Below, in pieces: positions 7,339-39,434 of a DNA stretch of 64,000 bases. The DNA is from Orbicella franksi (lineage: Eukaryota). The stretch is taken from the NCBI GenBank assembly GCA_964199315.1, contig OZ116698.1:18476001-18540000 (forward strand), in the 5' to 3' direction. Every line of letters begins with the position of its first letter. Position 1 is the first letter of the stretch. Under the pieces are notes generated by a model. That model was given only the letters and a program-made list of their open reading frames with translations. It made no database searches and was not told the origin of the DNA. The position numbers were made by a program, and so were the translations under genes.

Positions 7339-10300
7339 TTAATCCTGTTTCCCGAGACAGTGCGACATGATGTGCTTTCTGGCCTTTGATCGTGTGAAAC
7401 AGTAGTCATCGCTATTCAGAAGAAGCATGCAGTGCCTACGCAACAGGGGCTCAATGACAAGGCCTACCAGCGAGGCAGTGAATGTGCCCCCTCCCATGGC
7501 CACCACGATGTACCCCATGGCAAACTCCTTGTAACGGTCCTCGAATCTGTCCCTGAAAAAGGCCAATGCGTTGACGAAGAAAACGCCAATCGTTACTCCA
7601 CCGGTGAACGACAGCAGCAACACGATCCACACACTCGGTAAAAATCGGTACCAGGCCGCTAGGACGAAGAACAGAAGATGCATGACTTCTATTGTGGAGA
7701 GAACCCAAAGATACGGGAATTTAGCTTTTTCTGCCCATTCTGGTTTGATATAGGATAATGCCACATGATATGACCTTCCCACCACCTCACCCCCCAGGAA
7801 AACGAAGATGTAGTACTGATAGTGGTCACGTGGTCTGAAAGGCGCATTGGGAAATGCGAGTGTTGTGATAACTGATTGGATGATCATATATTCTGAGAAC
7901 CATGCGATATAAATCGGTATCAGACCAGGCAGCATCTGACGAATGACCATGAACTTTTCCCGGCAAGAAAGGGCACCATCACCTTTGCTGTTTTCCTCGG
8001 TTGATTCTTGAGTTTCTACGCGATCTGTTGAGAAATATATTCAACAAATACAAGTCAAGAAGACGGTCAGTAGCGCAACAGTATTGAAATAAAATAATAA
8101 TAATAGTATTGAAAACAAACTCGTTCCCAGGCTCTATCTCCTCTGCCTAGCTAGGGAACGATGAAAAAGGACAGTTGAAGGTTGCTCATGTTTTCCAATT
8201 GTATAATGACATACGCTATTTTAAACAGAGTTCGTGTCAAAGCTTTTGCTGGTGATTATATCTTATTTTCTCTTAACCTTATAACAAATCATGGGATAAA
8301 AGTCATGAGATTTAAGGTTCTCATCATGTCAGGAAAGACTGATTTAAAACAAAATTTTCTACGACATAGTTAAATAAAAAAAATCATTTTTGGTCAAAGC
8401 AACACACTAAATAGCCCGTTGGCTTTCAATTTAATCATGACCCTTAATTTTTACCTGTGGTGTCCAGCGCACTGTACTCTACTCCGGCATGCTCATCCCT
8501 TGGAGGACTGGCCTCCAAATGCTTCTTGTCCATGGCGTAGTAGCAAACAAAAATCAGGAGTAACATGGCCGCCATGATTAAAATGGTGGCATTTGGTGAA
8601 ACACAGGCCCATGTTGTCATGGCTACAAAACAAGAATAATAAAAACTTCAATTAGCGTCTTTTCAAATCGGTATAGAACTTGAATATTGCCGAACATCGA
8701 ATATATAATGGGAGTGAAAATAAAAATATCGAGCCTGATGCAGATACAGAGACCGATAGATAAGCTAAGGATGTTCCGTTTAAGGCAATCAAGGTCTTGG
8801 TAAGTGTTACCAGGCCCTTATGCGATGATCGCTCAGGCCCCGTCCGCACTACGCCGGTGAAATTTGAAAGCTTTCTACAATAACCGGTGATTTTTGGATT
8901 TGTGTTTGAGGAAACCTCGGTCAGGGAAATCACATGATGATCGTGACGTCATCGTTTTCAAAAAACTCCGTTTTCAAAATGTTTTCCGTCCACGCTAAAA
9001 CGCAAGACCGGCGTTTTCAAATTCCTCCGGTTTAAAGAGCGTTTTCGTGACGACGGATTAGTGTGGACGGTAGGCCTTACCGTAGAAATAAGGCTGCGTT
9101 TTCAAATTCCTCCGGCGTAGTGTGGACGCTGCCTTTTAGTTTGTATTCTGCTGGAAACCGACGTCGAATCTGATTGGTTGATTCATCAGACTTGAAATCA
9201 CTCACTATTCAATGATAGGTCACGTACGATGATGCACGCTTTACCCTTGAAAGAAAAGTTATTTTTTAGGGCTACCAAATGCTTAAATTTTCTATTTCTG
9301 ACAGCTATTCTTTACAGTGTCTACTACGCTAGCAATTACGCTGCTTTCGTTCTCTATGAGCTCGAGCGTCGGTCTCATAAAAATACTTGACCTCGTAGAT
9401 ATTTGCTAAATAATCTCACCCCTGTTTACATTATTATCATAATTCGTGTGTTATTCCAATATTTTATTTTTGTTTCTCGTCACAATTTGATCTCCTAGTC
9501 ACACAACTACAAAAAGACACGAGTAGCAAAATATCGAAATGGACTGCCGGAAACCAAACCGCAGAGGAAGTCAATTGTTTTCTGCTTTTAACTACTTTTC
9601 TTATATTATTAATTGCGCCGATCGTCATGCATTTTAATTTTATTTATGAGAATGTGATTTGCAGTAAGAGCTACATATTCTCATCACTCATGTACTTGAC
9701 ATGGAATAATATTATACGGAGAATTTGGCTGTTGATCAGTCTTGGAATACAGGCAACAGCTGCTCGGTTTGACTGTGCTATTCTTCAGTTCCCGGAAGTG
9801 TGAAATAAAATATTAATCAAGAGAAATGTGAATTTTAAATTGATAGTAAATATATTCTCTGTGGTATGGCGTTAAAAGGAATAACAAATTTCACTGAGTA
9901 TTTTACCACACAGACTGTAACATTACAACTGAATAACAAATAAACACAAAGTTACCTGTGTAATATAAGGGTGCTATCACAAACCCCGCCCCAGTGCCTG
10001 CTGAATAAGCGCTTACTGTGACCTCGTGATAAAACGAGGTGAGAGCGAGAAAAGTCACTTCACCGACGCCGTAACCAAACGAAGCTATCCCGACGCCAAT
10101 TAATTTCCAATGAACTTGTTTAGAAAACGAGAGCATGAGAAAACCGCCGATTCCACATAGGAAAACTGTCATGATGCGGGCAAAATACGGAATCTTTTGC
10201 ATGAAGTAAGGCGCGATTAACGTGACAAGAAAATACGGCCCGATGTCCGCGACGAGAACCATAGAAGTTTGAATAAATGTTCCTGCTAGTATATCTTGAG

Positions 10301-10451
10301 CACCAGCGATGACTAAGGAATATGTCGCGTAAATCAAACTTCCAAAGATAAAAAACGCTGTGACTGTGCGCAGCCGCTCACGTTCCTCTTGGTTCGGTTT
10401 GAAGCCACCATTGTTGATTGGCGTCAATGCAGTCCTGTTATCTGTGGCCAT
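7339..10451 (-). CDS. CLN3-like: CLN3/battenin-like MFS transporter, copy 1 (3 exons, 449 aa)
   Basis: Exons 10451-9956, 8622-8455, 8024-7339; GT-AG introns, both phase 1; 1350 nt open to stop. Battenin motifs AGAQDIL, GEVTFL, SAGTG, SEY, FLPS, EFAM. Confidence 0.9.
8835..9134. mobile_element. Non-autonomous PIF/Harbinger-like MITE (family A) in CLN3-1 intron 1
   Basis: TIR AGGCCCCGTCCGCACTACGCCGG...CCGGCGTAGTGTGGACGCTGCCT. The same family recurs at 24750, 29803 and 33997. Superfamily inferred from the TIR type. Confidence 0.75.
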
Positions 10452-15435: not shown

Positions 15436-16389
15436 TCATGGATTGAGTGTGCCAAAGTTTGTAGTTGGCAGTTTCCATCCCTGATCTTTATTCCGTCGAT
15501 TTAATCCCAGTACAATTTTTACGGAGTGTTTCAGTTCGTTGATACGAAAAGTTGTCAAGAAAGGATTCACAGTTGAATTTACAAACAAGAACACTATGGA
15601 CGATTCTTTGAACGCGAAAAACCATCTTCGTTCGTCACAGTCATTGCATTTCTCATAAAGAAGAGTTATAACAAAATACGGGAGAAGAGAAACTGTTAGT
15701 AGAAGTAAAATGAGGAAAGAAGTTGCGGCGATCTTTCTCTCTATTTGTGCATTTTTCATTCGTTGAATATCGCGTAGCGTTGAGTTCCTGGCCGATATCG
15801 TTTGTTTTTGCAATACAACTCGCCCTCTTTTTCTCAAAAAGAAAAATATCGCTAAGTAGGCTACATTAGTTGTCGTAAGAGGAAAGGTGGTATGCAAATG
15901 AACATCTATTATACGGTAAACATCCATTGCAACTCCAGCAAACTGAAGTGAGGCAAAAATCGAGGAGCAGACACAAATGACTGCGTTGAATAGCACGACA
16001 TTTCTTGGGCTGATTTTGCGGCGATAGAAATGAGGCCAGACAATTGCAATGAGTCTGTCAACTGACATGGCAGTCGCCAAGAGAATGGAACTGTTAATTC
16101 CAAAGTATCCCAGTATTTTAACGACGTCTCCTTCTTGTGGAATTTGACCGTCTCCTGACGTACATAGAAGTCGCATCACTGCTTCTCCAGAGCATACCAC
16201 GGTACCAATGTACAGATCGACTGCAGTTATAAACATCAGGAACATCGAGAAAGATTTTCGGAAACAGCGCAAAGGATTTCTGTACAACACCACCATGATA
16301 AAGCCATTGGAAACTGAGATAAAAAGTAAAAGAAAAGCAAAGGCTATACCACTTCCTAGACACAATGATTTTTCGAAATCATGATTCAT
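15436..16389 (-). CDS. Intronless class A GPCR, 317 aa, orphan
   Basis: TM1 SN, TM2 AVD, TM3 SVDRL, TM6 LLPY, TM7 VNPF; seven hydrophobic segments. Confidence 0.9.
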   Translation of the reverse strand: MNHDFEKSLCLGSGIAFAFLLLFISVSNGFIMVVLYRNPLRCFRKSFSMFLMFITAVDLYIGTVVCSGEAVMRLLCTSGDGQIPQEGDVVKILGYFGINSSILLATAMSVDRLIAIVWPHFYRRKISPRNVVLFNAVICVCSSIFASLQFAGVAMDVYRIIDVHLHTTFPLTTTNVAYLAIFFFLRKRGRVVLQKQTISARNSTLRDIQRMKNAQIERKIAATSFLILLLLTVSLLPYFVITLLYEKCNDCDERRWFFAFKESSIVFLFVNSTVNPFLTTFRINELKHSVKIVLGLNRRNKDQGWKLPTTNFGTLNP

Positions 16390-17369: not shown

Positions 17370-17668
17370 AGGTATGGTGAAGTCTCATTATACGAGCCAA
17401 GTGGCCCATTAGGCCGGAGCTTATCCCGGTTTCTGTAGCACGAAGCGACTAGGAGTTTCTACTCCTTCATGAATGGGATGCTAGTCCATCGCAAGTTTGC
17501 TCCCAGCATTAAATTCGCCGGTACCCGTTTATACACCTGGGTGGAGAGCGGCACTGTGAGAGTAAAGTGTCTTGCTCAAGACCACAACACAATGTCCCCG
17601 GCCAGGGCTCGAACCCGGACCGCTCAATCCGGAGGCGAGCACATTAAACGCGAGGCCACCGCGCCTCC
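17370..17668 (-). mobile_element. tRNA-derived SINE, full length
   Basis: Minus strand begins GGCGCGGTGGCCTCGCG (A-box-like) with B-box GGTTCGAGCC, then a CORE-like segment (CTTGAGCAAGACACTT...GTATAAACGGGTAC). Near-identical copies at 27256 and 57234. Confidence 0.85.
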
Positions 17669-17995
17669 ACGCTGGAGTTAAAACTGATTTGTTTTGTGCG
17701 ATGTCATCGGTCGATAAAACTGGTCCCAGTTACCGAGATTCATCTAACGTTTAGACTGAAATCAAACAAAAACCAGTTATGGCAAGACAATCGTGATTTT
17801 ATCCGAGAGGTATCGGGTACCAAGCCACATATTAATTTTGGCATATTAAAATTAGTTCATAAAATCAACCAATCAGCATAAGCGTAGCACCAGTATTAGC
17901 GGAAGCTATGGCGTCACGTGCAAACCACTTGGCCTTGCATATTAATGATATCATTACTAGTTGCTGCGACTGACGTGGCTGACATCATTCAGGTT

Positions 17996-18529: not shown

Positions 18530-18908
18530 ATGGCCTTAACACAGGAGTATTGGAGCATAGCGACGATGACGGGCTGAAACGAACTCATCAGGAGCGAGAA
18601 CGTCTGGGTGCAGTGACAGCGTTTTTGCTCTTTGGAATTTTAACGTACGCAGCATATTGCTTGGTCATCGCCGGTGCTCAAGATGTTATAGCCTAGACGT
18701 TTATTTAAACTTTTTTGGTCCTCATCGCGAACATTGGTCCGTAATTTTGTTGTTACGTTTATGGCACCAAATAGTGTCCCCAATTAGTTTTTTTTAAGCT
18801 TAATACTATTGACACTTTAATAAAGTCTACTCCTACTCCTTTGGAGTAGGTGTTGCTGAAATGACATTTTTGGCCCTCACTTCGTTTTATCAGGAGGTGG
18901 TATCGACA
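18530..18908 (+). pseudogene. CLN3-like pseudogene (exon 1 remnant)
   Basis: Translates as HQERERLGAVTAFLLFGILTYAAYCLVIAGAQDVIA*TFI*TFLVLIANIGP*, frameshift FVVTFMAP, an internal deletion, then YSFGVGVAEMTFLALTSFYQEVVST. No ORF is called here in the ORF track. Confidence 0.88.
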
Positions 18909-18945
18909 GATGAAGAAATTATATTCAATCAAGATTAGGGGAGGG

Positions 18946-19331
18946 AGGGAGGCGCGGCGGCCTCACGGTTAGTGCGCTCGTCTCCGGATCGAGTGGTCCA
19001 GCTTCGAGCCCTGGCCGGGCTCATTGTGTTGTGTCCTTGGGCAAGACACTTAACCGTCACGGTGCCTCTCTACCCAAGCGTATAAATGGGTACCGGCGAA
19101 CTTAATACAGGGGGGTAACCCTACAAAAGTCCATTTTTCCGCTACCTACCGTGAAAAGGTTTGAATTTGTATAGTTTCTACAAAATTTCGCAATTTTCCC
19201 TTGGCCTTACGTAAAGTCTTCATACGAACGAAGTGGCCCATCAGGTAGGAGCTTATCCCTGTTTCTGTAGCATGAAGCAACTAGGGAGTATTTCTATTAC
19301 CCCGTGTATGGAATGCTAGTCCATCGCAAGG
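18946..19331. mobile_element. tRNA-SINE split by a micro-inversion (5' half on +, 3' half on -)
   Basis: 18946-19122 is the SINE head through GGGGTAACCCT on +; 19212-19331 is the continuing part (GCGATGGACTAG...tail) on -. Confidence 0.75.
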
Positions 19332-19901: not shown

Positions 19902-20687
19902 TAAGACACACTCTGACACATATGCTGCCGGAGCTTCTCCCGGTTTAAACGTTTCTGTAGAAGTGAACCTAGAGGAGTAGTGAGTAGTGCTGCTCCCTCC
20001 ATAACTACTGGTCGGTTCTCATTGAAACTCATGGCTGAGTGAGTGTTACTGTGGGCAGTGACCCGCCTGGGTAGTGTTCGAACCCGCGAGTCACTAGATC
20101 TAGAGTCATTTTGTGACTGGCTTACCCAAGTAAATCTGTAACAGGAAGATAGCGGAAAAAACAACAATAAAACCGGTCTCTATTACAATAGTGGTAAAGA
20201 TCTAAGCACTCTTCATTATTCCTGCCAATACCGGTATAAAGGATCCATTTACGTGGCTTTGAACATTTATTTAAGTACTGAGTGAAGTTTGCTTCTTCCT
20301 TAGAAAAATGTGTAATTTCCTCTGTCTTTAACCAAGACATGCTCTTTACTCTGAATAATTCGATGCGCTTCCGATTAAGGGAGAACTAGCCTGCGTGATA
20401 AGCAGTGGACACCGCCGGGAGATAGACTACTTAATTAAAAGAGCGACACGTCCCACAGCATCGCAAGTCGTGGAAAACATAATGCTCAGTGATTTGGAAA
20501 GTTTGAATAGAACTTATGCAAATTTGTTGGTTCATGACAGTGAATTGATTGAAAAATTTGATTGCTTCACTAGTCAGATGGAACGATTCAATTATGGCAA
20601 AGAGAGCTGTGAACTCTGTACGCTTACTTTTCTAGGACGTTAGCAGTTACAAAAGCGCCACGACTGTGTCGCGTAATTAATTGGAAC

Positions 20688-23600
20688 ATGTCGGAATCCA
20701 GCAGAAGCCAAACAGCAGCTCTGTCAGTAGCTAACGACTGTGATGGGATTAAACTCAACAACGGACAGGAACGCGAGCGACTGCGCACAATCACAGCGTT
20801 TTTCATTTTTGGAACTTTGATTTACGCAACATATTCCTTAGTCATCGTTGGTGCTCAAGATATTCTAGCGGGAACGTCAATTCCAACTTCTATATCTCTC
20901 ATCGCATTGGTTACACCGGGTTTTCTTGTTACTTTAATCGCGCCTTATTTCATGCATAACATTCCGTATACTGCTCGCATAATAACGTTTTGTTGTACGG
21001 GAATCGGTGGTTTTCTCATGCTAGTGTTTGCCAAGCAAGTTCATTGGAAATTAATCGGAGTTGGGATTGTGTCGTTTGGAAGCAATTTTAGTGAAATCAC
21101 TATTTTGGCTCTCTCGTCATTTTATCACGAAGCAACGTCGACAGCCTTTTCTGCCGGAACGGGGGTAGGATATTTGATAGCTCCCTTATATTATACAGGT
21201 GAGTGTTTGTACTTAGCTGTTATTAACCGAGCAGGAGGTCTGTATGGGAGAATCTTGACCGAGGTGGTGAGTACAGACCGAACGCAGTAAGGTCTGTACA
21301 CACTTCCGAAGTCAAGATTCTCCCATACATACCGACTAAGCTGGCTTAATAAGACGTTTATAGCAGCATGATAGCGTCATTTGACTACAACTACCAGAAT
21401 TCTTTTCGTTTTTTCTTTATTCTATAAATTTTGAATTTCCAATGGGGTTTAAATGACAATTGCCCTAATTAACATAAGAAACAGAGAAAGTGAAGGACTC
21501 TGTTAATTGTAGTCAAATGACGCCATCATGCAAATCGCCTATTATATGGCAAACACAAAAAATCTAATTCGTTTTATGTAACTGTGGCTCACACTAGCTA
21601 ACTGATTTTGCTTGCGAACGGCGATGAGCTGAACTAAAATCTGCCAAAGTTTGCTCCTTCCTTACTTTTTTTTTTTCTCGTCAGGCTTTTCGGCACTTCC
21701 ACTAATATTTTTAGAAGAAAATTGTCAATATTCTTGTATTTTAAATTGCAACTTTTTCACCACAAAACGTTACTGGTCTAGATGCTGGTCTAGATGGGAA
21801 AATCTAATATCGATTTCAGCCAATCAAATTCGTGAATTTGGTAGTTCCCAGTCCTTGTAAGACAGAGCCATATAATAAGTTGAAACAAGCGCCAGTAATT
21901 CTTCCCATTTTTGTCATTGGAACATAATATAATCAGGATTTAAGAAGAATTTTTAGAAGGGGCTACGATTTCTCCAATTCATCACTTTTTACCAGAATGC
22001 GTTGCATTAATTAACCAGAGTGCACTGCGCCACATTTTCACACATCGCAGTGGACGCGTCCTTTACGCAGTCTGTCAACATTCTAGAGACATTCAATGCG
22101 TACCAGTATAGAATTTATAAGTTAGATTTCTGCTCCCACAATTTCCACACCTTTCGATTTTCGGGATCTGGTAAAGGGGAGGTCGATGTGTATCGTTTCA
22201 TGTCCAGTTCAGATCACTATGAGCTTTTTTGTCGCGATCCCTTGTCGCACCTCGCCATCGATGCGTCATCATGCATGAAGTTAATGCATACAAGGACAGA
22301 TTTGAAGTTACACACTACTTTAAGAAATAAAGGTTAATGTAAGTCTTGGAACGTGCAGGTAGATGAATCACTGCGTAAAATATGTCACTATCAACAAAAT
22401 GCGCCGCAGCATTACTATCTTTTGGATACCCTAGTCATACGGCTTGATTGCCCGCTGTTGAATGTGTCATTACTCCAGCAGTCCCACGATTTGCCCCAAG
22501 CAAAATCTGCGTCACTTGATTGGCTATTTCTAGGTCCTTCTGGGATTTCGGAATAAAAATAGTTTGGGACTGATTTACCTGGGTAATAAAAGCTTTATTA
22601 TTCATGTCTCGTAGCCATGACAACTTGGGCCTGTGTTTCACCAAGTGTAACAATTTTAATCATGGCGACCATGTTGCTTCTGGGCTTTGTCTGCTACTAC
22701 GTCATGGACAAGAAGCATTTAGAGTCTCCCAGTCCTCCAACGGATGAACATGCCGGAGTAGAGTACAGTGTTCTTAATACTCAAGGTAATATATTGTACA
22801 CGTAAATAGATCTGCACGTCTACCGGGTCTTGCAAAAGCTGGTTTTCAGTCAAGCATGAGCCAAGAAGAGACGTCTGTTACTTGGCGACCGCAAGCACAG
22901 GCTAGATTTCCCGAGTAGAAAATATTTGCAAAGCAAGGCTTAAAACTTAAATCCTTATGGTCCTTATGAACTAGACCGTACAGTCTGTTCCTAGATCCTT
23001 TTTTCCGAAAAATAAAGCTACAGGAAGTTATGAGGATAAGTATTATGATGACATTATTAGTGCGCTATCGTGATTCCACTCGGCTTAACCCATGAGGTTT
23101 CCGGCTGTCCTTAATAGTTGGTCACACAAGAACTAAAACTGAACAAACTCAAGTCAGACTTTGCACTTCAAAAAGTTACCGGCGTGGGAAGCCTCCCACC
23201 ATTTGGCATTCAACAATAGTATGTCCTAACTAGGAACATACACAAAAATGCCTTAGATTAGGACGGTGAGATATGACAAACTCGACTCAAGCCTGTCAGG
23301 AGAGGGGGGGAGGGGTGGGGGTGGTTCATCGCTGCGGGAAGAAGAAGAGCGAGTAAGTAGTCAAAGCTATCGTAAACCAAAAAGACTGAATGAAATTTGG
23401 GGAAAAGTAAGTTATCTTCCATAAGGAGTCCAGCCTAAGGAGGCTAGTTGACAAGTTAGAGTACCAAATATTGCAAAGTTCTGAAGATCGTTTTTTATGC
23501 AGAGTCCCAAGCAGGATTAAGAGAATTTTTGAGGGAATTTGAAAGGTAAAATTCCCTATTGACTGGCATAACAAAAAACTTGTTTTACTTTAACAGATGA

Positions 23601-24306
23601 TGGATGTCAGAACTCCAAAAGAGACGACAACAACAGCGTGGAATCAACAGAGGAGAACAGCAATGATGTTGGCTCTCTCTCTTGTCAAAAGATATTTATG
23701 ATCATTCGTCAGATGCTGCCTGGTCTGATATCGATTTATACTGCATTTTTCTCAGAATATATGATCATTCAATCCGTCGTTACAACACTAGCTTTTCCCC
23801 ACGCTCCCTTCAAACCACGTGACCACTATCAGTATTACATCTTTGTTCTCATGGGGGGTGAGGTGGTGGGAAGGTCATATCTTGTGGCATTGTCCTATGT
23901 CAAACCAGAATGGGCAGAAGAAGCTAAATTCCCGTATCTTTGGGTTCCCTCGACAATAGAAGCCACGCTTCTTCTGTTCTTCGTCCTGGCGGCCTGGTAC
24001 CGATTTTTACCGAGTGTGTGGATCGTTTTGCTGCTGGTATTTGCCAGTGGTGCAGTGGTTGGTGTTACCTATGTTAATGCAGTAACGTACTTTAGGGATA
24101 GCTTCAAGGACCGTGATAAGGAGTTCGCCATGGGGTTCTTCCTTGTGGCCATAACTGGGGGCGTTTTTGCTTCTGCTTTGTTAGGCCTTTACGTTGAGCC
24201 TACCTTACGCGAGCACTGCACAATGTTTACAAATAACAGCGACTTTTGCTTTACAAGATCAAAGTCCTTAGATCGTTTTACTTCAACATGTACTAAAATA
24301 ACCTGA
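20688..24306 (+). CDS. CLN3-like: CLN3/battenin-like, copy 2 (3 exons, 463 aa)
   Basis: Exons 20688-21198, 22615-22785, 23597-24306; GT-AG, phase 1/1; 1392 nt open to stop. Confidence 0.9.
21220..21878. mobile_element. Stack of three adjacent MITE/foldback elements in CLN3-2 intron 1
   Basis: (i) 21220-21352 foldback TTATTAACCGAGC...GCTGGCTTAATAA; (ii) ~21365-21543 with inverted CATGATAGCGTCATTTGACTACAA / TTGTAGTCAAATGACGCCATCATG; (iii) 21540-21878 TATTATATGGC...GCCATATAATA. Absent from the paralogous intron of copy 3. Confidence 0.8.
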
Positions 24307-24446
24307 TTAACTGATTAAAAAGCCGTTCTCACGTACATACAATTGTTTGTCATTTGCTATTATTTTTCTACTGAACTAGACTCGTCAGGACTGAGTATCA
24401 CCTCAGCTCGAGACAAGTAGAAATCATTGTGGTCTTGTGTTATCCC

Positions 24447-24530
24447 TCCCGGGTGAGGTTGGTCCTTCAAAGGAACTTGTTTGGTTGCGATCGATTTTGA
24501 CAAACTAAGCGGAAATCATCTTTAGAATGA
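24447..24530 (-). mobile_element. Degenerate Penelope-like terminal fragment with dead hammerhead
   Basis: Reverse complement aligns with the element at 37742-37860, but the core reads CUAAAGA...GUCAAAA. A truncated paralogue lies at ~29537-29590. Confidence 0.55.
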
Positions 24531-24749
24531 AAATCTTTTTCTCCGCGTTGTGACAATTATCATAATCTGCGTTACTTAATGATTGAGTCAATAAATTAAT
24601 CATATTCACTCATTTATGAACTCTCACTAACAGGCCATTTTCCGAGTTCTGTTTCAAAACGAGTCATGACTCACTCGATCATTTTGAGACAGAGGCAAAA
24701 GACGATTTGGAAAGTACTTATTGCACGGCTGGCGCTACTTGGAAATTTT

Positions 24750-25026
24750 GGCCACGTCCACACCACGCCGGAGGAATTAAAAAACTCAACAATCACTGGC
24801 CATTTTGGATTTGTGTTTGAGGAAACCTCGATCAAGGGAACATCATGATTATCGTGACGTCATTGTTTTCCAAAAGCTCCGCTTTCAAAATGTTTTCTGT
24901 CCACGCGAAAGCGAAAAGCCCGCGTTTCAAGTTTCCCCTCTCCGTTTTGAAAGAGCTCCGTTTTTGTGACGGATTAGCATGGATGGTAGACCTTACCGTA
25001 GAAATAAAGTTGCGTTTTCAAATTTC
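24750..25026. mobile_element. Family A MITE, right end deleted
   Basis: GGCCACGTCCACACCACGCCGGAGGAATT start; body matches 8835-9134; ends at GTTTTCAAATTTC. Confidence 0.75.
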
Positions 25027-25960
25027 ATCAGCAAAATGCATTGCGCGTGGCGCGATCCTTTTATTCTGGTTTTCATGTCACACGAAATTACCGAAGTTGA
25101 GGACACGGGGATGATGCCAGCAAGGCCTTCGAGGTTTCCTCTTTGTTGGAAACCTTACGGATGAAATGAACTGATTTATCCCGGATAAACGTTTCTGTAG
25201 AAGTGAATCTAGAGGAGTAGTGAGTAGTGCTGCTTCCTCCTCCCCCTCCCCACCTCTGGATGAGATGCTGTGTGTAGCTCAGCATTTTTCGTGTTTCCAT
25301 AACAGCTGGTCGGTGCTCATTGAAACTCGTGGGTGAACAGTGGCACTGTGGGTAAAAGGTGTCTTCCCATACCACACGAGGTAATGACCCGACTGGCTGA
25401 CTCCGCGGGTCACTAGATCTAGAGTCATTTGGTGACCGGTTTGGGCTAGCAGAAGAAACAACAATAAAACCAAAGTCTTCAGTACAATCTAAGCAATCTT
25501 CATTATTTCTGCCAACACAGGTATAAAGCATCTATTTACGCAGCTTTGGACATTTACTTAAGTATTGAGTGAAGTTTGCTTCTTCCTTAGAAAAATGTGT
25601 AATTTTCTCTCTCTTTAACCAAGACATGCTCTTTATTCTGAATAATTCAATGCGCTTTCGATTAAGGGAGAACTAGCCTGCGTGATAAGCAGTGGAAACC
25701 GCCGGGATACAGACCATTTAATTAAAAGGGAGACACGTCCCACTGCATCGCAAGTCAGGGAAAACATAATAGTCAGTGATTATACAAATGTGTTGGTTCA
25801 TGTGCAGTGATTGAAGAATTTGAATACTTCACTAGTCAGATGGAACGATTCAATTATGGCAAAGACTGGCGTCCTTCAGAGCTGTGTACTCTGTACGCTT
25901 ACTTCTCTAGGACGTTGGCAGTTACAAAAGCGCCACTACTTTTTCGCGTAAAATTGGAAC

Positions 25961-28900
25961 ATGTCGGAATCCAGCAGAAGCCAAACAGCAGCTCTGTCAG
26001 TAGCTAACGACTGTGATGGGATTAAACTCAACAACGGACAGGAACGCGAGCGACTGCGCACAATCACAGCGTTTTTCATTTTTGGAACTTTGATTTACGC
26101 AACATATTCCTTGGTCATTGCTGGTGCTCAAGATATTCTAGCGGGAACGTCAATTCCAACTTCTATATCTCTCATCGCATTGATTGCACCGGGTTTTCTT
26201 GTTACTTTAATCGCGCCTTATTTCATGCATAACATTCCGTATATTGCTCGCATAATGACGTTTTGTTGTACGGGAATCGGTGGTTTTCTCATGCTAGTGT
26301 TTGCCAAGCAAGTTCATTGGAAATTAATCGGAGTTGGGATTGTGTCGTTTGGAAGCAATTTTTGTGAAATCACTGTTTTGGCTCTCTCGTCGTTTTATCA
26401 CGAAGCAGCGTCGACAGCTTTTTGTGCCGGAACGGGTGCAGGATTTGTGATAGCTCCCCTATATTACACAGGTGAGTGTTTATACGTTGAAATAAGCGCC
26501 AGTATTTCATTCAATTTTTTATTATTATAGGACTGGTTAGCGTGCTGTTGAATGAGTCATCACTCCAGCAGTCCCACGATTTGCCCCCAACAAAATCTGC
26601 GTCACGTGATTAGCTATTTCTACGCCCTTCTAGGATTTCCGAAACCACGAGTCATCTAAAAATAGTTTGAAACTGATTTATCTTAGTTTGGGAAAAATGC
26701 CTGTATGGGGGATTAGCTCTCCTAATATTTATCCTGTCTTGTTGAAGCGTAAAAATTTGAACAACACCTATACTTTTTCTATTGCTGAGTGGCCGAATTG
26801 ATAGAGCTTTAAGGTTTACGGCAGTTGAGCCGAAGCCAATTCATCGCTTATGTATTAAGTACTTTTTAAAAAAGTGGTAAAGTAAAACAATTATTACAAA
26901 AATTACCTTCGGAGAACGTTTTCTACTTCTTGGAGACTTTTTATCTGAAAAAGCAACATTGTTTAAGCTTTATTATTCTTGTCTTGTAGCCATGACAACG
27001 TGGGCCTGTGTTTCACCAAATGCCACAATTTTAATCATGGCGGCCATGTTGTTTCTGGGCTTTGTTTGCTACTATGTCATGGACAAGAAGCATTTAGAGT
27101 CCCCCAGTCCACCAACGGAGGAACATGCCGTAGTAGAGTACACTGTCCTTAATACTCAAGGTAAAATATTTTCGGCTGAAATAAATATCCACACCAGCCG
27201 GGTCTTGCAAAAACTGGTTTTCCTCCAGCATGAAATATACGGGGATAGGCACTGAAGGTAAAGTCTCCATAAGTGGCTCATCAGGCCGGAGCTTATCCCA
27301 GTTTCTGTAGCATGAAGCGACAAGGAGTATTTCTACTCCCCCCTGGATGGGATGCTAGTCCATCGCAGGGTTACCCCAGGATTACGATCGCCGATACGCA
27401 TTTATACACCTGGGTGGAGAGAGGCACTGTGAGAGTAGTGTCTTGTCCAAGAACACAACACTATTTCGCGGCCAGGGCTCGAACCCGGACTGCTCGATAC
27501 TGCTCGGAGACGAGCGCACTAACCATGAAGCCACCGCGCCTCCACGAAGAGACACTTTTAAGCTCCGGCGAGATTTTCCGAGTATAAAAACGCTCCAAAG
27601 CATGACTTAAAACTGGTAGACCGTATGAACTGGACCATATGCTCCCTTTCCGAAACATTTAGGCCACAATTATGAGGATAACTATTATGATAATATTATT
27701 GGTGCGCCATCGTGATTGCACTTCGGTTAACCCAGTTTCTCTCTTTAACGTTCGGTCACTCGGAAACTGGAACTTTTGCAAATTTAAGTCTAAATTTGCA
27801 CTTCAAAAAGTTAGCGGGGTGGAAAACCTACCATTCTTTGTTATTCAACAACAGAGTATCCTAACTAGGAACACACACAAAAAATGCCTTAGATTAGGTA
27901 AGATATGGCAAACTCGACTCAAGCCTGTCAGGAGAGGGGGTGGGAAACTCCTTGAATTGCTGGCTCATCGCTGCGGGGAGAAGAGTGAGTAAACTAGTTG
28001 AAGCAATCGTGAACCAAAAAGACTGAATTAATTATTATGAAAAGTAGGTAGCCTTCCATAAGGAGTCCAGGCTACAGAGGCAAGTTAAAGTACCAAATAA
28101 TGCAGTTCCAAGCAAGACTAAGAGAATTTTAGAGCGATTGGCTTAGTCAAATTTCCATTTGACTAGCATAACAACAACAACAAGCTTTCATTCCCTTGGT
28201 TTAACACAAATATTTTTACAAAATTGTATATCACTAGAGTTAGGGTCCTGGCTACCTGAAATAACTAAAGAGTTAAAAAGGGCAGGCAGCCAGGTCTACA
28301 GATGTATTAATACACATACACAGAACACATAGTGAGCAATAAATAAGTGCTATACTAGAACATTTGGTAATGCTATAGAATAGGGGGAATGTAGAGCAAA
28401 TAAAAGCTAATAGAAAGAAATAGACCAGAACAGCCTTACAGATCCATAATGCAAGTGTTCCTAGTATTTTTCGAAATATTGATCTTTTATCATTTTCTTG
28501 AACATAGATAAGGATAATAAGTTTACATCATAATTCTAAATTGAGGGGCCTTGAAACCGAATGTTAAACTTACCATAGTTTTTGCATAAGGAAGATGGTA
28601 AGACTATTTAGCTGCAAGTCTAGTATTGAAATTATGGACATTGCTTACTCTTGTCAAAACTAACAACTTGTCATGCTTTAACAGATGATGGATGTCAGAA
28701 CTCCAAAAGAGACGACGACAATAGCGTAGAATCAGCAGAGGAGAACAGCAATGATGGTGGCCCTTTCTCTTTTCCAAAAGTATTTATGGTCATTCGTCAG
28801 ATGCTGCCTGGTCTGATGTCGATTTTTATCGCATGGTTCTCAGAATATATGATCATTCAATCTGTCGTTACAACCCTAGCTTTTCCCCACGCTCCCTTCA

Positions 28901-29397
28901 AACCACGTGACCACTATCAGTATTACATCTTTGTTTTCATGGGGGGAGCGGTGGTTGGAAGGTCATATCTTGTGGCGTTGTCCTATGTCAAACCAGAATG
29001 GGCAGAAAAAGTTAAATTCCCGTATCTTTGGGTTCTTTCGATGATAGAAGCCATGCTTCTTTTGCTCCTCGTCCTGGCGACCTGGTACCGATTTTTACCG
29101 AGTGTGTGCATCGTTTTGCTGCTGGTATTTGCCAGCGCTGCAGTGGTTGGTGTTACCTATGTTAATGCAATAACGTACTTTAGGGATAGCTTCAAGGACC
29201 GTGATAAGGAGTTCGCCATGGGATTCTTTCCTGTGGCCGTAACTGGGGGCATTTTTGCTTCTGCTTTGTTAGGCCTTTACGTTGAGCCTATCTTACGCGA
29301 GCATTGCACAATGTTTACAAATAACAGCGACTTTTGCTTTACAAGGTCAAAGTCCCTTAATCGTTTTACTTCAACATGTATTATAAAACCTGATTAA
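25961..29397 (+). CDS. CLN3-like: CLN3/battenin-like, copy 3 (3 exons, 464 aa)
   Basis: Exons 25961-26471, 26990-27160, 28685-29397; GT-AG, phase 1/1; 1395 nt open to stop; very similar to copy 2. Confidence 0.9.
27256..27545 (-). mobile_element. tRNA-derived SINE in CLN3-3 intron 2
   Basis: Same family as 17370-17668; absent from the equivalent intron of copy 2. Confidence 0.85.
28170..28660 (-). mobile_element. 5'-truncated CR1/L2-like LINE fragment
   Basis: Minus strand encodes RVSNVHNFNTRLAAK*SYHLPYAKT / GKFNIRFQGP, resembling the ORF2 C-terminus. Ends in a (GTT)n tail; TAACAAC on both sides is a possible TSD; absent from copy 2. Confidence 0.7.
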
Positions 29398-29802
29398 ATG
29401 ATTAAAAATCCGTTGATATGTACTACATACAATTATTGCTGTTATTGCTGTTATTTTTCTACTGAACTAGACTCGTCAGGACTGAGTATCACCAGAACTC
29501 CAGTCAAATCAAAACTATTTTCGTCTCGTGTTATCTCTCCCGGGTGAGGCAGGTCTTAAAAAGAAACGTTTTTGGTTACGGTCGGTTTGATCTTTTTCGT
29601 TATAATAATTATCATAATTTTCGTTACTCAGCGAATTGAGTCAATAAGTTTATCATTCACTCATTTATGAACTCTCACTAACAGGCCATTTTCCAAGTTC
29701 TGTTTCAAGACGAGTCATGACTCACTCGATCATTTTGAGACAGAGGCTTCTTGGAAACTGTTTATTGCACGGCTGGCGCTACTTGGAACTCGAAATTTAT
29801 GT

Positions 29803-30153
29803 TCCACCCACCACACCACGCCGGAGGAATTTAAAAACTCAACAATCACTGGCCATTTTGGATTTGTGTTTGAGGAAACCTCGATCAGGGGAACATTATG
29901 ATCATCGTGACGTCATCGTTTTCTAAAAGCTCCGCTTTCAAAATGTTTTCCGTCCACACGAAAACGAAAAACCGGCGTTTTCAAATTTCTCCATACCGTT
30001 TTCGAAAAGCTCTGTTTTTGTGACGGATTAGTGTAGACGGTAGACCTAACTGTAGAAATAAAGTTGCAATACTAGACTTGCAGCTTTATAGTCTTACCAT
30101 CTTCCTTATGCAAGAACTATTGTAATTTCTCCGGCGTAGTGTGGACGCTTCCT
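29803..30153. mobile_element. Family A MITE interrupted by a 59-bp insertion
   Basis: Body matches family A; right TIR CCGGCGTAGTGTGGACGCTTCCT; foreign sequence at 30067-30125. Confidence 0.75.
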
Positions 30154-32717: not shown

Positions 32718-35247
32718 ATGGCAGACGAAACAACAGAACGTGAAACGACAGAGATGGAGTTATTCCCCGCTAAAGAGGAAAATCACCAAGCGAAAGAAAA
32801 ACCAGTAACAATCCTTGCTTTCTACATTTTCGGCTTCTTGATTTATGCGATTTACTCACTGATAATATCGGGTGCTCAAGACATTCTTGCAGGAACATTT
32901 GTTCCCACATCAGCCGTGCTGGTTGCCAACGTCGGACCATATTTTGTCATCACTGTGGTGGCTCCGTATTTCATCCAAAAAATCGCGTATTTCCCCCGTG
33001 TGATGGCCATATTTTTTCTTGAGGCTACAGGACTTATCATGGTGGCCACAGCCAAGCGAGTTGGAGTGAGATTGTTGGGGGTTTCATTATCTTCGTTTGG
33101 ATTTGGTTTAGGGGAGTTATCTTTCATAGCCATGACGTCTTTCTACCATGATACGGCAGTTAGCGCCTTCTCAGCCGGTACAGGGACTGGTATTTCACTA
33201 GCGCCCCTATATTACACAGGTATCTTGTTTATAAGACTAACTATTCTTACCATTATTTACTTTATGTGCATCATAGTTTTTACTAACTTCTAATGTGACT
33301 CAATTGAACTGTGGCCGATGCAAATATTGTATTTTATTGTTCCAGTGTATTGCCAGCCCGAAATTCGGTTAACTTATTATCCGTTCGGGCAGTCACAGGG
33401 TTTTTGAATGAGTTTAAAAAATGATTTATAAGTTAAGAAAATTAAAACTTTGAGTTGCGGACTCAAAATGCACTGTCACAAGTCAAAAAGTTGCAGGAGT
33501 AATATACGTGAGTTGAAAATAATAATACAGTGTTGTCGATCTATTATACACGGCATCTTACTGATAAAGGTGTTTCCAGCCTTTCAGTTCTGTGTATATT
33601 GTATTGCTAATCAATGGAAGATATCTAATAATTATAACAAGAAGCAATTGCCTAACGTTTATTTTTTTTGTGTTTGAAATGATCCCGAAAACAGTTTGCA
33701 GAAATCAGCTAAAATCAATTTTAAATTCCCTAAAATTCATGCAGGTGAAAAAGTTAATAGAATCATGAATTATAATGTTGGTCACGATCGCTTGTCATTC
33801 AATTTGGTTTAATTTCAAACAAGGCTTTGTCAGTAATATTTCGCACGAATTTCTCCAATACACCACCAGCCTTCTGATTGGTTAACTCGGAGGTGATAAG
33901 CAAAGTACTATTCACCTCCACTTCACTGAATAATTGCTAATTTACGCCAAGGAACTAAAACATGCCACAGATGTTCTTATTCAAACTTTGTTGATTAACG
34001 CCCCTTCCGAACTATGCCGGAGGAATTTGAAAACGGAGCTTTCACACTGAAAACGCATGAAATGTTTTCCGTCCACACTAGGCCGGAGGAATTTGAAACG
34101 CAACAATAACTGGTCGTTTTGGATTCGTGTTTGAGGAAAACTCGGTCGAAATCACATGATTATCGCGATGCCATCGTTTCGAAAAGCTCCGTTTTCAAAA
34201 TGTTTTCCGTCCACACCCCAACGAACAGCCTGCGTTTCCAAATTCTTCCGGTTTGAAGAGCATTTTTGAAAAGCTCCGTTTTCGTGACGGATTAGTGTGG
34301 ACGGTAGGCCTAACCGTAGAAATAAAGCTGCGTTTTCAAATTTCTCCTGCGTAGTGCGGACGCTGCCTCTATAACTCAGTGGTGCATTTTTATTTTTATT
34401 CTATGAAGGACTGAGCACGATTTCTCTCTATTCCACAGCCATGACAACATGGGCTTGTGTGTCTCCCCCCTTGACCATTTCTATCATGGCTGTCAGTTTG
34501 GTGTTGCTGTTGATATTCTACGGTCTGATGGAGCGAAAGCACTCTCAGTCTTGGCAGTCTACAGCAAACGGAATCACTCACAAGGACATTCAATATTCAC
34601 CTATCGAGGAACAGGAAACAGACATCGGTGATGAGCATTTAACTTGGAAGGAAAAATGTTCAGCGATCAAAAGTGTGCTACCGATCATTGCTTCCATAAT
34701 CAGTGCATGGATTGCAGAATATCTGATCATCCAATCCGTCATCACCACGATAGCGTTCCCGAGCGCTCCGTTTCCACCTCGCGACCACTATCAGTATTAT
34801 ATCTTCGTTTTCCTGTTCGGGGAACTGTTCGGTAGATCGTATTTGATCGTTTTATCGTATCTCATGCCGAATGTAGCTCGAAAGCTAACCATACGCAGAA
34901 TATGGTTTCTTGCTGTAGCAGAGATAGGAATTTTACTTTTCTTCTTGCTGGCGGCTTGGTACCGCTTTTTAAGTGACGTTTCTATAGTTTTGGTTCTTGC
35001 CTTCATCGGTGGTCTGGTAATTGGCGTTATGTACGTAAATATGTTAGCGATTTATTCCGAAATCGAGGAGCCGAAATCCAGAGAGTTTGTTCTGGGGTAC
35101 GCCTCTGCTGCGACTGGCGCTGGGGCGATTACCGCTGGCTTGTTAGGATTGCTGATCGAGCCGTGGTTGCGTCGTCACTGTTTAAGTGTGGCAGCAAATA
35201 GCAGCTTTTGTTTCACTCGTTTGCAGGGAGGTGGAGTTTGTAAATAG
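32718..35247 (+). CDS. CLN3-like: CLN3/battenin-like, copy 4 (2 exons, 436 aa)
   Basis: Exons 32718-33219 and 34439-35247; phase-1 GT-AG intron at the same YYT^ site as in the other copies; 1311 nt. Confidence 0.9.
33997..34368. mobile_element. Family A MITE (longest copy) in CLN3-4 intron
   Basis: Internally repeated GCCGGAGGAATTTGAAA; right TIR GCGTAGTGCGGACGCTGCCT; ends 70 bp before the splice acceptor. Confidence 0.75.
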
Positions 35248-35497
35248 ACAAAGCAAACAACGACAGCAAGAGAATTTTTTCAAGCATTAATTTTGACTGG
35301 GTTCACTTAGGATAGTACTGATTCAAACCAGAATGGATTCGAACGAAATAGATTTGTAATTGTTTCCCAACAGGGAACACAAAAATAACTTAACATAGCT
35401 ATCCGCTTTGCTTAAATTTAAATTTGCAATTGCTGTTGTATGGTCTGTTTGATTCAATGCTGTTATATGGTCTGTTTGCTCCAATCAATACAAGTGT

Positions 35498-35545
35498 AAA
35501 ACAAACAAACAAACAAACAAACAAAACAACTAACAAACAAACAAA
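35498..35545. repeat. (CAAA)n microsatellite
   Basis: Direct reading of the sequence. Confidence 0.9.
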
Positions 35546-35759
35546 TAGGGCAAAATTCACCGATCGTTTTCAACAGTTACAGGTTGGTGCTACATATAAA
35601 CAACCCGCAGGTGCAGGTAGTTTCACTCTAGGTTTAGGAATTGTCTCATGAAGACAACTGCGTCTCTAAAATTATAATTAACTCAAATACCGATTGAAGC
35701 GCAGAGAAGCGTTTTTAAAAAAGAACTGTCTATGTTGCGGAATGCATTTTACCGTACCA

Positions 35760-35982
35760 AATAAGGTGTGGTAGTTCTTGGAACAAGGAAGCTGTCTGTT
35801 ATGATAATGTAGGCAGAGTTCATATGGCGTTTAGTCTTCTCACTGGGGCAAAAGGGACTGTATCTAATGACGAGATGGTACAGTCCATTAGGGGTAGAGT
35901 TTATAAGAAGTAAATGTTGGCCTCCTGAAGGACCTGTAGCCGAAATGTTATTGCTCCACTGCGGAAAATTGTTCGAGAACAT
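35760..35982 (-). mobile_element. Possible degenerate LINE ORF2 C-terminal relic
   Basis: One minus frame reads WTVPSRH*IQSLLPQ*ED*TPYELCLHYHNRQLP, loosely resembling non-LTR RT C-termini. Confidence 0.3.
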
Positions 35983-36994
35983 ACTGACATTTGTCTGTAA
36001 AAAGAACTGAACATGATAATAATAATTATGCAGTCAATACAAATGTTGATATGCTTGAATCACCGCAGTTTGTAAATTAAATTAAACAGAGGCTATTGTT
36101 TTCGAGTATCATATTACCCTGATTTGCTTGCTGGTAGAGTCAGCTTTCTTTCGACCCATGCCTCCTGAGAGTAAGCACCGAGCACAAGAAAGTCCTTGAA
36201 GTACACCAGTTTAGTTCGTTTATTTTCCTCTAAGATGAACACCTCTTCAAGGCAAAGCTGGTTCCTGGCATGTTCACTACAGCGGGGAACTGGTAGGAGA
36301 GCTCAATTCAGTTCTTTTGCAATTTTTAGTCTTTTCTATAACAGAGCCAAATCACAGCGAAACTTTGTGCTTTGTCGATAGTTTAGGTAGGTCTTGTCCA
36401 AAATTGTCCGAAATTCGTCACGGTCGAAGCAAATTTACTTTAATCCCCCATAATTCATGTCGGCCATTGCAGTTTAGTCCGTTCAGCTGGTGGACTTTTG
36501 CCACCTGTTTAAACTGTCATTAGTTTGTTTTTCCTTGATCAAAACGTCAGCGATTATTAGAGAACCTTGGAGAGCTCAAGTATTTTAACATCTGGAGATT
36601 TACCACCATTTCCAAGTCCAAACCAGAAGGAAGACTCTCTTCACGGTTGGCGGGTTACTGAGTCGCAAAGAAACGGGATTATCTTGAATTACCAGCTAAA
36701 AATCTTACATTCAAGTTTGATCAAGATCCAACCCTTGTTTCTTGTTTCTTTGTGGCCACCAGGTTGTATAACGTAAGCCAACGGAATGTGTCCTTGGACA
36801 ATCAAAATTTTATTGACGAGTTGTGTACCATGACGTGAGAGTCAAACGTCTCTTGGCTTTGATCGCTCTCATCGTGAAAATCACGCTCCCACAAGTTTAA
36901 TATTATATGGAAGCTTCCGATTTATCAGTTAAAGGGAAGGAAAGCAAACCAAGAGGAACCTAATTGCTAGTGGTCGACTTTGAAGAAGCTCAAA

Positions 36995-39434
36995 ATGGAG
37001 AACACTGCTGAGAAAGGCGAAGAAAACCCGGAGGAAAACCCTACGAAAGACAAGGAAAACGAGGAAAACAACGGAAGCAAAGAAATAAAAGCTGCAAAGA
37101 CAAAGAAAGAGCCGTTACGGAATCTTTTTGCTTTCTACGCTTTCGGGGCGCTCATCTACACAGTGTATTCTGTCATCATTTCAGGCGCGCAGGACATTTT
37201 GGCGGGTACTTTTATTCCGACGGCGGCCGTGTTAGTAACAAATGTTGGTCCGTATTTTCTTGTGACGATGATCGCACCCTATTTCATTCACAAAGTACCT
37301 TATGTTGTTCGAATAGTGGCGATTTACGCTTTTTTTACAGCTGGTCTGTTTATAATTGTCTACGCTAAAGAGGTTTATCTCAAGTTAGTTGGAATCTGTA
37401 CAACGTCCCTGGGGGCCGGCATTGGGGAAGTGTCGTTTTTTACCTTGACTGCATATTACGAGAAAGTTACGGTAGCCGCGTATTCGGCGGGAACTGGTTC
37501 AGGATTTATCTTAGGACCTCTTTATTATACAGGTATGTTTAAAGCTCTTTTGTGCTTATTTGTAACGCACTACCGGGGTAAATTATTATTTTTCGAGCAG
37601 ATGCTCGAAGAAATTGTGTCGATCTTATCTCACGCAATGTTAGACTTTGTTTCATTTACGTCGGAAACTGAATATAGCAAACGCACGCTTAGAAAAAGTG
37701 GATTTACTGACCCAAACTAATTGTACATCAAAAATCGTGGCTAACTTTGTTCACTTGACTCTGAAGATGACTTCAGCTCAGGTTGTCGAAACGTCAGTCA
37801 CCAACAACGGTTCTTTTCAGAACTACCATCACCCGGACGATCACACTATACGAACTAACTTTGTTTTGTGATTGAAGGAAAATTGGCATATGTCTGAAAA
37901 CTTCAATCCTCATTCTTGAGTTGTTTCCCGCCCTGGCACCTGGAAAGCAAAACAAAACATTCCAGCAAGCAGGGCAAATAATAACCTCCCACGAAAAATC
38001 TCCAATCCATTCAATAGTAGTTTACCTCTTATCCTTTCATCATTAGGTTTAAGAATAAGCTCTGTCATTTCAAAGACTTCGATACTTCCACTTAATTAAG
38101 GTATTACAGGATCTCTCTGTTCGGTTATTAGTTTTCTCTCTTATCATACTGAGACGTCTTTTTTATTTCTAAAATACCTGTGACAGATTACGAGAATGCT
38201 GTGCCATTTTGGCCCGTGTTTGGGTTGGTTTAGTTTCTTCCCAATAGAGTACACTCAAAGAGACAGTTAATGATTTTTTTCAAAAAATAATTAAAGCAGT
38301 AACTGTGCTTGATTGCCAGCAGCTCAAGTTTCGGCCTCTGTTTTCATTCGGAGGGGGAAATACAAATAGCAACGTCTCGCCTCCGAGCCTGTAGTTTACG
38401 TGGTCAAAGTCAAAGTTGTAAGCAACATGGCGTTGTCATTGGGCCGGGTACCATGCTGATGTGACTGTTGTCGGAGTGCAATGATCGTGCGAGCTCGCGT
38501 CAGGTTTTGATTGGGTAATAAAGATCGAAAACGTGCCGAGTGCTTAAACGAATATTTTCTCAAAGCAGGACTTGTTTTCGGGACTGTTTTAGAAGAAACT
38601 CTCAAGAATAAGATATCGTCTTTGCCTTAAAATCTTCGTTCGTTATTTTTCGCAGGTCTAACAACATGGAGTTGTGTCTCGCCAAACAACGCTATGCTAA
38701 TAATGGCGGGGTCGCCTCTTCTTTATCTGCTATGTTATGCTATCATGGAGAAAAAACACTCTAAAGCTGTAAAACTAGATTCTACGTCGGAAGATAGCAA
38801 TGGAACGGAACCACACACAGTCACGTGGAAAGAGAAACTTTCTGCAGCTGGACATATTCTCCCATTGGTTATAGCTCTGTTTGTTGCCTACGTCAGCGAA
38901 TACGTCATCATACAGTCTGTCATCACTACAATGGCATTTCCAAACGCTCCATTCCCACCAAGAGTTCATTACAGATACTATATTTTTATATTTTTGAGCG
39001 GTGAATTTATTGCCAGGTCGTATCTAGCTGTCATTGCGTCGCTAAAGCCCAGTCTCGTTAACGTATTTGCAATCAGACGGATATGGATTCTGTCGTTGAT
39101 ACTGATGGGTCAGTTAGTCTTTTTCACGCTGGCTGCGTGGTATCGATTCTTACATGACGTCTGGATCGTTTTTATTTTAATCTTTGGCGCTGGCCTAGGA
39201 GCGGGCGCGGCTTTCACAAATGCTTTTGTGGTGGTTTCAGAGACTGATGCTAAGTTCAAAGAATTTTCCATGGGATTCGCTACCATCGGGATGGGTGCGG
39301 GGACATTTTGTGCCGGGGTAGTGGGACTCCTCATGGAGCCTGTGATCCGTGATCATTGTTTAGCTGTATCAGATGTTGGCGATTATTGTTTTACGAGACC
39401 TTTTGGTGGATGGAATCAAACTATAGGCTGCTGA
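36995..39434 (+). CDS. CLN3-like: CLN3/battenin-like, copy 5 (2 exons, 438 aa)
   Basis: ATG at 36995; exons 36995-37532 and 38656-39434; phase-1 GT-AG intron at YYT^G; 1317 nt. Confidence 0.9.
37756..37800 (+). ncRNA. Minimal type I hammerhead ribozyme within a Penelope-like terminal fragment (~37742-37860)
   Basis: UGACU-CUGAAGA-U-GAC[UUCAGCUCAGGUU]GUC-GAAA-C-GUC^-AGUCA. Stem I is a perfect 5 bp, stem II 3 bp, core intact; predicted cleavage after C37795. Confidence 0.8.

Follow-up and report, generated by a model that had tools for sequence, protein, structure and literature searches.

We describe here a tandem array of genes of the CLN3/battenin family in a stretch of 64,000 nucleotides from the coral Orbicella franksi (GenBank assembly GCA_964199315.1, contig OZ116698.1, positions 18,476,001 to 18,540,000, forward strand), which is called the window below and in whose own numbering all positions are given. 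Between positions 7339 and 39434, the window holds five intact coding sequences and one pseudogene fragment of this family. We consider it probable (roughly 0.8) that the locus represents the coral form of a tandem array that is old within hexacorals; its divergent CLN3/battenin transporters would go back to a processed founder copy and would act as endomembrane solute exporters. This reading is built on the gene structures, membership in the family and its fold, orthology, synteny, the relative timing of the duplications, and the intron pattern. The existence of such genes has been on record for some time, as they carry 'Battenin' or 'BTN1-like' annotations in public databases and the Nematostella copies have been labelled 'Battenin' in UniProt ever since the genome was first released. 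What is new and of most interest is the intron evidence for a processed-copy founder.

Gene structures and family membership

Open reading frames of 180–270 amino acids that match the Pfam CLN3 profile (PF02487; E 1e-22 to 1e-33) are strung out over positions 7339–39434 (7.3–39.4 kb), with N-terminal and C-terminal halves alternating. All CLN3-like pieces of the window were located by tblastn with two assembled proteins as queries, and canonical GT-AG splicing joins them into five stop-free coding sequences with one or two introns each, here named A to E, beside which a single decayed fragment was found:

10451..9956 / 8622..8455 / 8024..7339, minus strand: CLN3 paralogue A (A-type), 449 amino acids, 3 exons
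18538..18908, plus strand: CLN3 pseudogene fragment, an exon-1 remnant of A/B/C-type, found by tblastn
20688..21198 / 22615..22785 / 23597..24306, plus strand: CLN3 paralogue B (B/C-type), 463 amino acids, 3 exons
25961..26471 / 26990..27160 / 28685..29397, plus strand: CLN3 paralogue C (young tandem copy of B), 464 amino acids, 3 exons
32718..33219 / 34439..35247, plus strand: CLN3 paralogue D (D-type), 436 amino acids, 2 exons
36995..37532 / 38656..39434, plus strand: CLN3 paralogue E (E-type), 438 amino acids, 2 exons

Four of the models are independently confirmed by database proteins that align with them end to end and without gaps, namely A by P0062 (99.1 % identity), B by P0086 (98.9 %), D by P0001 (99.5 %), and E by P0078 (100 %). 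These proteins are cDNA-derived, because their source contigs of 1.7–3.9 kb are too short to contain the intron-bearing genes of 2.4–3.6 kb. An earlier sequence-only reading of this DNA had proposed five battenin-like genes of 436–464 amino acids with one or two introns as well as one pseudogene; both proposals hold, given the five stop-free GT-AG models (four of them with cDNA-derived matches) and the three in-frame stops in the exon-1 remnant.

Its assignment of these divergent, tandem, and intron-poor genes to CLN3/battenin is likewise borne out. In the Pfam check that it had suggested, database proxies of the window proteins match the CLN3 profile over practically its full length (positions 2–392 of 395) and far above the cut-off of 31 bits, with 205.1 bits for D, 231.4 for A, 215.5 for B, and 226.6 for E, while two exons of gene C score 95 and 87 bits on their own. 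For comparison, mammalian battenin reaches about 466 bits on the same profile, as against 205–231 for the window-type proteins. An AlphaFold2 model of D, built from an alignment of 60 sequences, has about 12 long helices, a mean pLDDT (predicted local distance difference test score) of 88.4, and a pTM (predicted template modelling score) of 0.86. Searched against the Swiss-Prot part of the AlphaFold database, this model returned BTN1/battenin proteins from fungi, mammals, and Dictyostelium on all of ranks 1–20 (TM scores of 0.67–0.76, E 1e-16 to 1e-10), followed by ENT transporters and then by other MFS proteins such as MCT7. Among solved structures, the model matched MFS and ENT transporters, and a sequence search of the PDB found no solved relative of CLN3. 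Judged by profile and model, the five genes thus encode genuine but divergent CLN3-family proteins with a predicted MFS-like fold.

Orthology, synteny, and order of duplications

CLN3 homologues with species names were recovered from a wide range of stony corals and sea anemones. Phylogenetic trees with 103 and 60 members (IQ-TREE in the quick mode of the posterior mean site frequency model, with support from the Shimodaira–Hasegawa-like approximate likelihood ratio test, SH-aLRT) sort the window genes among them by type. Gene E forms a clade with the E-types of Desmophyllum (P0100) and Nematostella (SH-aLRT 100), gene D with the coral D-types and Nematostella P0024 (SH-aLRT 99), and genes A, B, and C with every A/B/C-type sequence from corals as well as with gene 1 of the Nematostella cluster, its A-type (SH-aLRT 99); FastTree supports the A-, D-, and E-type clades of corals and Nematostella at 0.976–1.0. 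In each of these clades, the Nematostella gene is sister to the coral genes. Within the A/B/C clade, B groups with Desmophyllum P0079 and Stylophora P0097, and the split between A and B/C falls within the stony corals.

The genomic arrangement agrees with these groupings. Nematostella has three adjoining CLN3 genes around P0024 on chromosome OW051989.1, whose best window matches by tblastn are A (63 % in exon 1), D (68–75 %), and E (66–68 %), that is, one gene each of the A-, D-, and E-type standing side by side. The two clusters also share a phase-1 intron and the neighbour gene at the E-type end, and the Nematostella E-type gene has a two-exon structure identical to that of window gene E. 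They differ in that Nematostella has three genes instead of five and a pseudogene, in gene orientation, in the number of introns (three in the Nematostella A-type and four in its D-type, compared to one or two in the coral), and in the other flank, where NBAS takes the place of the coral GPCR (G-protein-coupled receptor) genes. In the coral Desmophyllum pertusum, about 30 kb of scaffold MU825881.1 hold one E-type gene, one D-type gene, and three genes of A/B/C-type. The D-type (87 % identity) and the E-type (88–89 %) have the exon structure seen in the window and the A/B/C-types have three exons; however, the latter lie on the strand opposite to D and E, and they include a recent duplicate pair of this species' own (ABC1/ABC2).

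The flanks of the array supply further markers of synteny:

3443..4588, minus strand: intronless rhodopsin-type GPCR flanking A (Pfam 7tm_1, E 2.2e-27), synteny marker
15436..16389, minus strand: intronless rhodopsin-type GPCR between A and the pseudogene (Pfam 7tm_1, E 4.5e-21), synteny marker
44041..46501, plus strand: conserved gene downstream of E that has no Pfam match, synteny anchor
48337–48738, minus strand: VWA-domain exon, counterpart of a Desmophyllum VWA/PAN-domain gene in the same relative position
59180–60229, minus strand: third intronless rhodopsin-type GPCR open reading frame near the CLN3 array (Pfam 7tm_1)

The gene at 44041–46501 is 67 % identical to the neighbour of the Desmophyllum E-type gene, downstream of which a VWA gene is also found, and 27 % identical (E 2e-24) to a 591-amino-acid neighbour of the Nematostella E-type gene. 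In Oculina, the A-type gene P0068, which shares 91.6 % identity with A, is enclosed by two GPCR genes and has a B/C-type gene as neighbour; the GPCR at 15436–16389 is 75 % identical to the one adjoining this A-type gene, and the GPCR at 3443–4588 is 66 % identical to the second flanking one. The radiation of these genes had been proposed to be lineage-specific, which is contradicted by the one-to-one A/D/E trio of Nematostella, the Desmophyllum cluster, and the GPCR/A-type/GPCR arrangement of Oculina.

Taken together, the array goes back to the ancestor shared by sea anemones and stony corals, which already carried one A-, one D-, and one E-type gene. On the stony coral side, the A-type gene then duplicated in place to give A and B/C; in the lineage of this coral, B duplicated again very recently to give C, which is possibly drifting toward loss, and one further CLN3 copy decayed to an exon-1 stump. 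Judging from the sequence, the B/C duplication and the pseudogene are the only recent events. The pseudogene aligns by tblastn to residues 5–74 and 124–144 of A and has, in addition to its stops, an internal deletion or frameshift; tblastn found no remnants of exon 2 or 3 downstream of it. The proteins of B and C are 88.6 % identical (dS 0.113, dN/dS 0.50), and the duplicated unit spans about 20200–25013 and 25487–30067, respectively, i.e., about 4.6–4.8 kb each.

Gene C is intact, and its function is doubtful. Among database proteins there is no end-to-end match to a transcript of C, the best being the transcript of B at 89 %, and two metatranscriptomes yielded none of its spliced joints, only low-depth contigs that run on into the introns. 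A polyA library has zero reads over the exons of C, a figure that comes without a control on the other paralogues. At sites conserved in at least 95 % of the clade, C departs six times (including E316A, at a conserved clade-specific glutamate), compared to four departures in B, one in A, and none in D or E. Faster evolution of C than of B was also considered and is not clearly seen, with 19 lineage-specific changes in C and 17 in B.

Intron 2 of gene C contains a dispersed SINE-like (short interspersed element-like) repeat at 27270–27540, related copies of which lie at 57255–57499, 17399–17671, and 18948–19331. In metatranscriptome contigs, the word depth of this repeat climbs to as much as about 1.8e5, and in one polyA RNA sequencing run no other part of the region is covered. 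The unequal intron lengths of B and C are probably explained by differing SINE-like insertions. A scan of the whole window against Rfam at gathering thresholds gave no matches. At a relaxed limit (E<=1), the intron of gene E, including 37756–37849, matched no hammerhead model, and its sole match was a Histone3 stem-loop-like element at 37804–37849 (24.6 bits, below the threshold of 34).

Introns and the founder of the family

All five window genes have a common phase-1 intron in a ...LYYT|(A/G)... motif, and a further one, also of phase 1, recurs in A, B, and C. Because intron positions and phases are shared in this manner, the copies within the array arose by tandem duplication at the DNA level and not by retroposition. 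The sequence-only reading had called the cluster possibly retro-derived, which accordingly fails for the duplications within it; for the founder of the anthozoan family as a whole, the same idea is plausible, as a comparison with canonical CLN3 genes suggests.

The canonical CLN3 gene of a chiton has 15 exons and 14 introns, ten of which fall, in mammalian residue numbering with the phase in brackets, at 124(2), 153(1), 177(2), 225(2), 263(1), 279(0), 302(0), 320(2), 352(0), and 399(0), with four more closer to the N-terminus. These introns agree in position and phase with all eight human boundaries that can be derived from coding-sequence numbering (c.375-, c.461-, c.533+, c.677+, c.837+, c.906+, c.963-, and c.1198-; PMC6900386), and the intron set therefore predates the split of protostomes and deuterostomes. 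Against it we mapped 12 anthozoan genes exactly, namely the five of the window, Nematostella P0024, P0126, P0168, P0132, and P0299 (between them covering the deepest subclades of Anthozoa), Desmophyllum P0079, and Oculina P0068. These genes have none of the 14 canonical introns, of which eight were compared with human boundaries. Instead, all 12 carry a non-canonical phase-1 intron at human/vole residue 200/201, and their other introns, after residues 234(0), 254(1), 274(0), 333(2), and 385(1), are non-canonical as well. The A- and E-type cluster genes of Nematostella also have an intron at the shared residue-200/201 site, as judged by the boundaries of tblastn high-scoring segment pairs (HSPs), and all Nematostella CLN3 proteins recovered fall within this intron-poor clade.

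Since no canonical intron is left and one novel intron is universal, the founder would have lost all introns at once and subsequently gained one. The anthozoan family thus most likely began with a copy that was processed (a retro-copy) or purged of introns in some other way, and this copy would have acquired the new intron prior to the radiation of the family; any poly(A) or target-site-duplication traces of the founding insertion would have eroded at such an age. A possible, albeit clearly less likely, alternative is that the intron-poor state was reached by gradual and independent intron loss and sliding from an ordinary gene. This would be in line with the varying intron number (four in the Nematostella D-type, three in its A-type, one or two in corals), so that loss would be ongoing, and with the Nematostella D-type intron at residue 274 (phase 0), which lies just five residues from the canonical phase-0 intron at 279. 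However, gradual loss would have had to remove every canonical position from each of the 12 genes, which span all major anthozoan subclades, and still leave one and the same non-canonical intron in all of them. Moreover, Nematostella genes generally are reported to keep most human intron positions (Putnam et al. 2007).

All 40 anthozoan sequences fall into one clade (SH-aLRT 100), whose stem is long, at about 1.1 substitutions per site, and which stands apart from the clade of vole, chiton, sea star, and a choanoflagellate, and weakly beside Amoebozoa (SH-aLRT 82). Along with the lack of any intron position in common with canonical CLN3, this placement could indicate that the anthozoan family did not arise from metazoan CLN3 and matches the CLN3 profile by chance, its source being a eukaryotic paralogue of greater age or a gene acquired by transfer. 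We regard this as unlikely, for forcing anthozoan and bilaterian sequences into one monophyletic group costs 26 log-likelihood units and is not rejected by the approximately unbiased test (p 0.074), the long stem is open to long-branch artefacts, no clade member outside Anthozoa is among the best 150 representatives, and the core CLN3 residues are kept. The simplest reading of the anthozoan family is hence descent from metazoan CLN3 with acceleration.

Canonical-type CLN3 from a named cnidarian was not found in searches of protein databases, which did not extend to the whole genome of this coral or of Nematostella. A word-based search with the Nematostella 'battenin' P0168 returned only P0168 itself and one fragment, and protein-cluster searches aimed at a canonical cnidarian CLN3 gave broad CLN3, ENT, and MFS clusters only. 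Conceivably, then, anthozoans (or at least hexacorals) replaced canonical CLN3 with a retrogene-derived lineage that radiated to at least 10 paralogues with altered polar and charged helix residues and a new cysteine-rich tail, a scenario we put forward tentatively, as possible rather than probable. If it were true, these genes would amount to a set of naturally occurring CLN3 variants that have diversified in substrate or compartment, with the A/D/E cluster as a conserved core kept for several hundred million years. Separately, a Logan contig encodes a canonical-type CLN3 protein of 430 amino acids (P0234) that stands equally far, at about 50 % identity, from the battenins of fish, oyster, and nemertean; a search dominated by fish battenins found no close named relative of it, and should its source be a cnidarian, this would be the canonical gene not found above.

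As an evolutionary case, the family would combine an apparent processed-copy founder, the gain of a single intron, a radiation, and a trio of genes conserved from anemones to stony corals.

Symbiosis, predicted function, and comparison with other CLN3 genes

For coral biology, the outcome is mainly negative. Copy number does not track symbiosis, because the azooxanthellate deep-water coral Desmophyllum has at least five clustered CLN3 copies plus one elsewhere, and in the genome of non-symbiotic Nematostella at least 10 divergent loci are counted, the cluster included (at least 12 proteins if near-identical RefSeq pairs are counted), with those beyond the cluster on other chromosomes. The CLN3 radiation is thus neither specific to this coral nor correlated with algal hosting, and neither its presence nor its expansion is restricted to symbiotic cnidarians. 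Several observations could nevertheless be cited for a recent, lineage-specific radiation in a symbiotic coral with recruitment to the symbiosome or to digestive vacuoles: the B/C duplication is recent (dS 0.11), the split of A from B/C is confined to stony corals, and the symbiosome derives from the phagosome. CLN3 is, furthermore, endolysosomal in other organisms (PMC6900386). Yet this scenario, advanced by the sequence-only reading, which had suggested a comparison of copy numbers between symbiotic and non-symbiotic anthozoans as a check, is largely refuted by the species distribution and appears very improbable, as Desmophyllum and Nematostella have as many copies or more, the A/D/E trio exists along with its flanking gene in Nematostella, and a full-text literature search found no paper on a cnidarian CLN3 expansion or on CLN3/battenin in coral symbiosis. 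(A text match to 'BTN1' in PMC13324520 turned out to be part of a DOI string.) The cluster is no evidence for a symbiosis-specific adaptation, because non-symbiotic relatives carry it too.

What the proteins may do is suggested by residues they keep and residues they have changed. Among the positions of disease missense variants in human CLN3 (residues as listed in PMC6900386), L101, G187, G189, E295, and R334 are kept in all five window genes, and most of them have L170, G165, and R405 either unchanged or exchanged for a similar residue. The positions of G192, V330, Q352, D416, S131, C134, and A158, on the other hand, are not conserved, those of D416 and G192 being hydrophobic. At sites conserved in at least 85 % of canonical sequences, the cluster clade shows the replacements N49Y, L56I, S186A, A191G, N299I, Q323I, V330E, S333G, and S336Y, all of which lie in helices predicted by the model of D; the clade-specific glutamate of V330E stands four residues, or one helical turn, before the invariant R334. 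The anthozoan proteins further differ from canonical CLN3 in a stretch of about 10 additional residues behind the R334 helix and in a C-terminal tail with conserved cysteines (HC...[YF]CFTR...C), where human CLN3 has the CaaX box CQLS. None of the five window C-termini has a CaaX box (they end in ...GVCK, ...TIGC, ...CLGKQD, ...CTKIT, and ...CIIKPD), nor were the EEE(X)8LI and M(X)9G lysosomal sorting motifs known, like the CaaX box, from human CLN3 (PMC6900386) found in them; in the cytosolic loop, an acidic cluster is followed by L-S or L-T and not by LI. Both the CaaX box and the sorting motifs characterise vertebrate CLN3 rather than the family as a whole.

Mammalian CLN3 is needed for the egress of glycerophosphodiesters from lysosomes, and both this role and the endolysosomal location are known only from mammalian, zebrafish, and yeast CLN3 (PMC11749349, PMC10776888). 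By homology, the window proteins are putative solute exporters of endomembranes, probably endolysosomal ones, that may have shifted in substrate or coupling. From the sequences, differences in substrate, coupling, or compartment are probable both among the paralogues and between them and canonical CLN3. The mechanism and substrate range of CLN3 are still under study, mostly on single-copy canonical genes, and a family that retains the CLN3 core with altered helix residues could help to find the positions that set substrate or coupling.

Several points weigh against the view of the locus as an old array with a processed founder and five working transporters. Tree support consists of SH-aLRT and FastTree values, and two Nematostella and three Desmophyllum sequences in the trees were stitched together from tblastn HSPs. 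The canonical intron set is represented by one protostome and human, so that stepwise loss in anthozoans or gain on the bilaterian stem is conceivable. The five functional genes may be four, with gene C lacking a spliced transcript, and the transport function predicted for the anthozoan proteins is that of their homologues.

Compared to known systems, multiplicity in itself does not set the array apart, and the premise of the sequence-only reading that CLN3 is normally single copy was too strong. The sea star Patiria miniata has two canonical-type battenin genes (P0195 and P0201) on different scaffolds, and Caenorhabditis elegans has three genes, cln-3.1, cln-3.2, and cln-3.3, so that in neither species is CLN3 single copy. 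Both are small expansions of canonical type that, as far as known, have neither a conserved ancient cluster nor a replaced intron set. With human CLN3 and yeast Btn1, the window proteins share the full-length profile match and a predicted fold that is nearest to BTN1/battenin; in contrast, their identity to canonical CLN3 is only 24–30 %, and their genes are multi-copy and clustered, with one or two non-canonical introns in place of the canonical 14.

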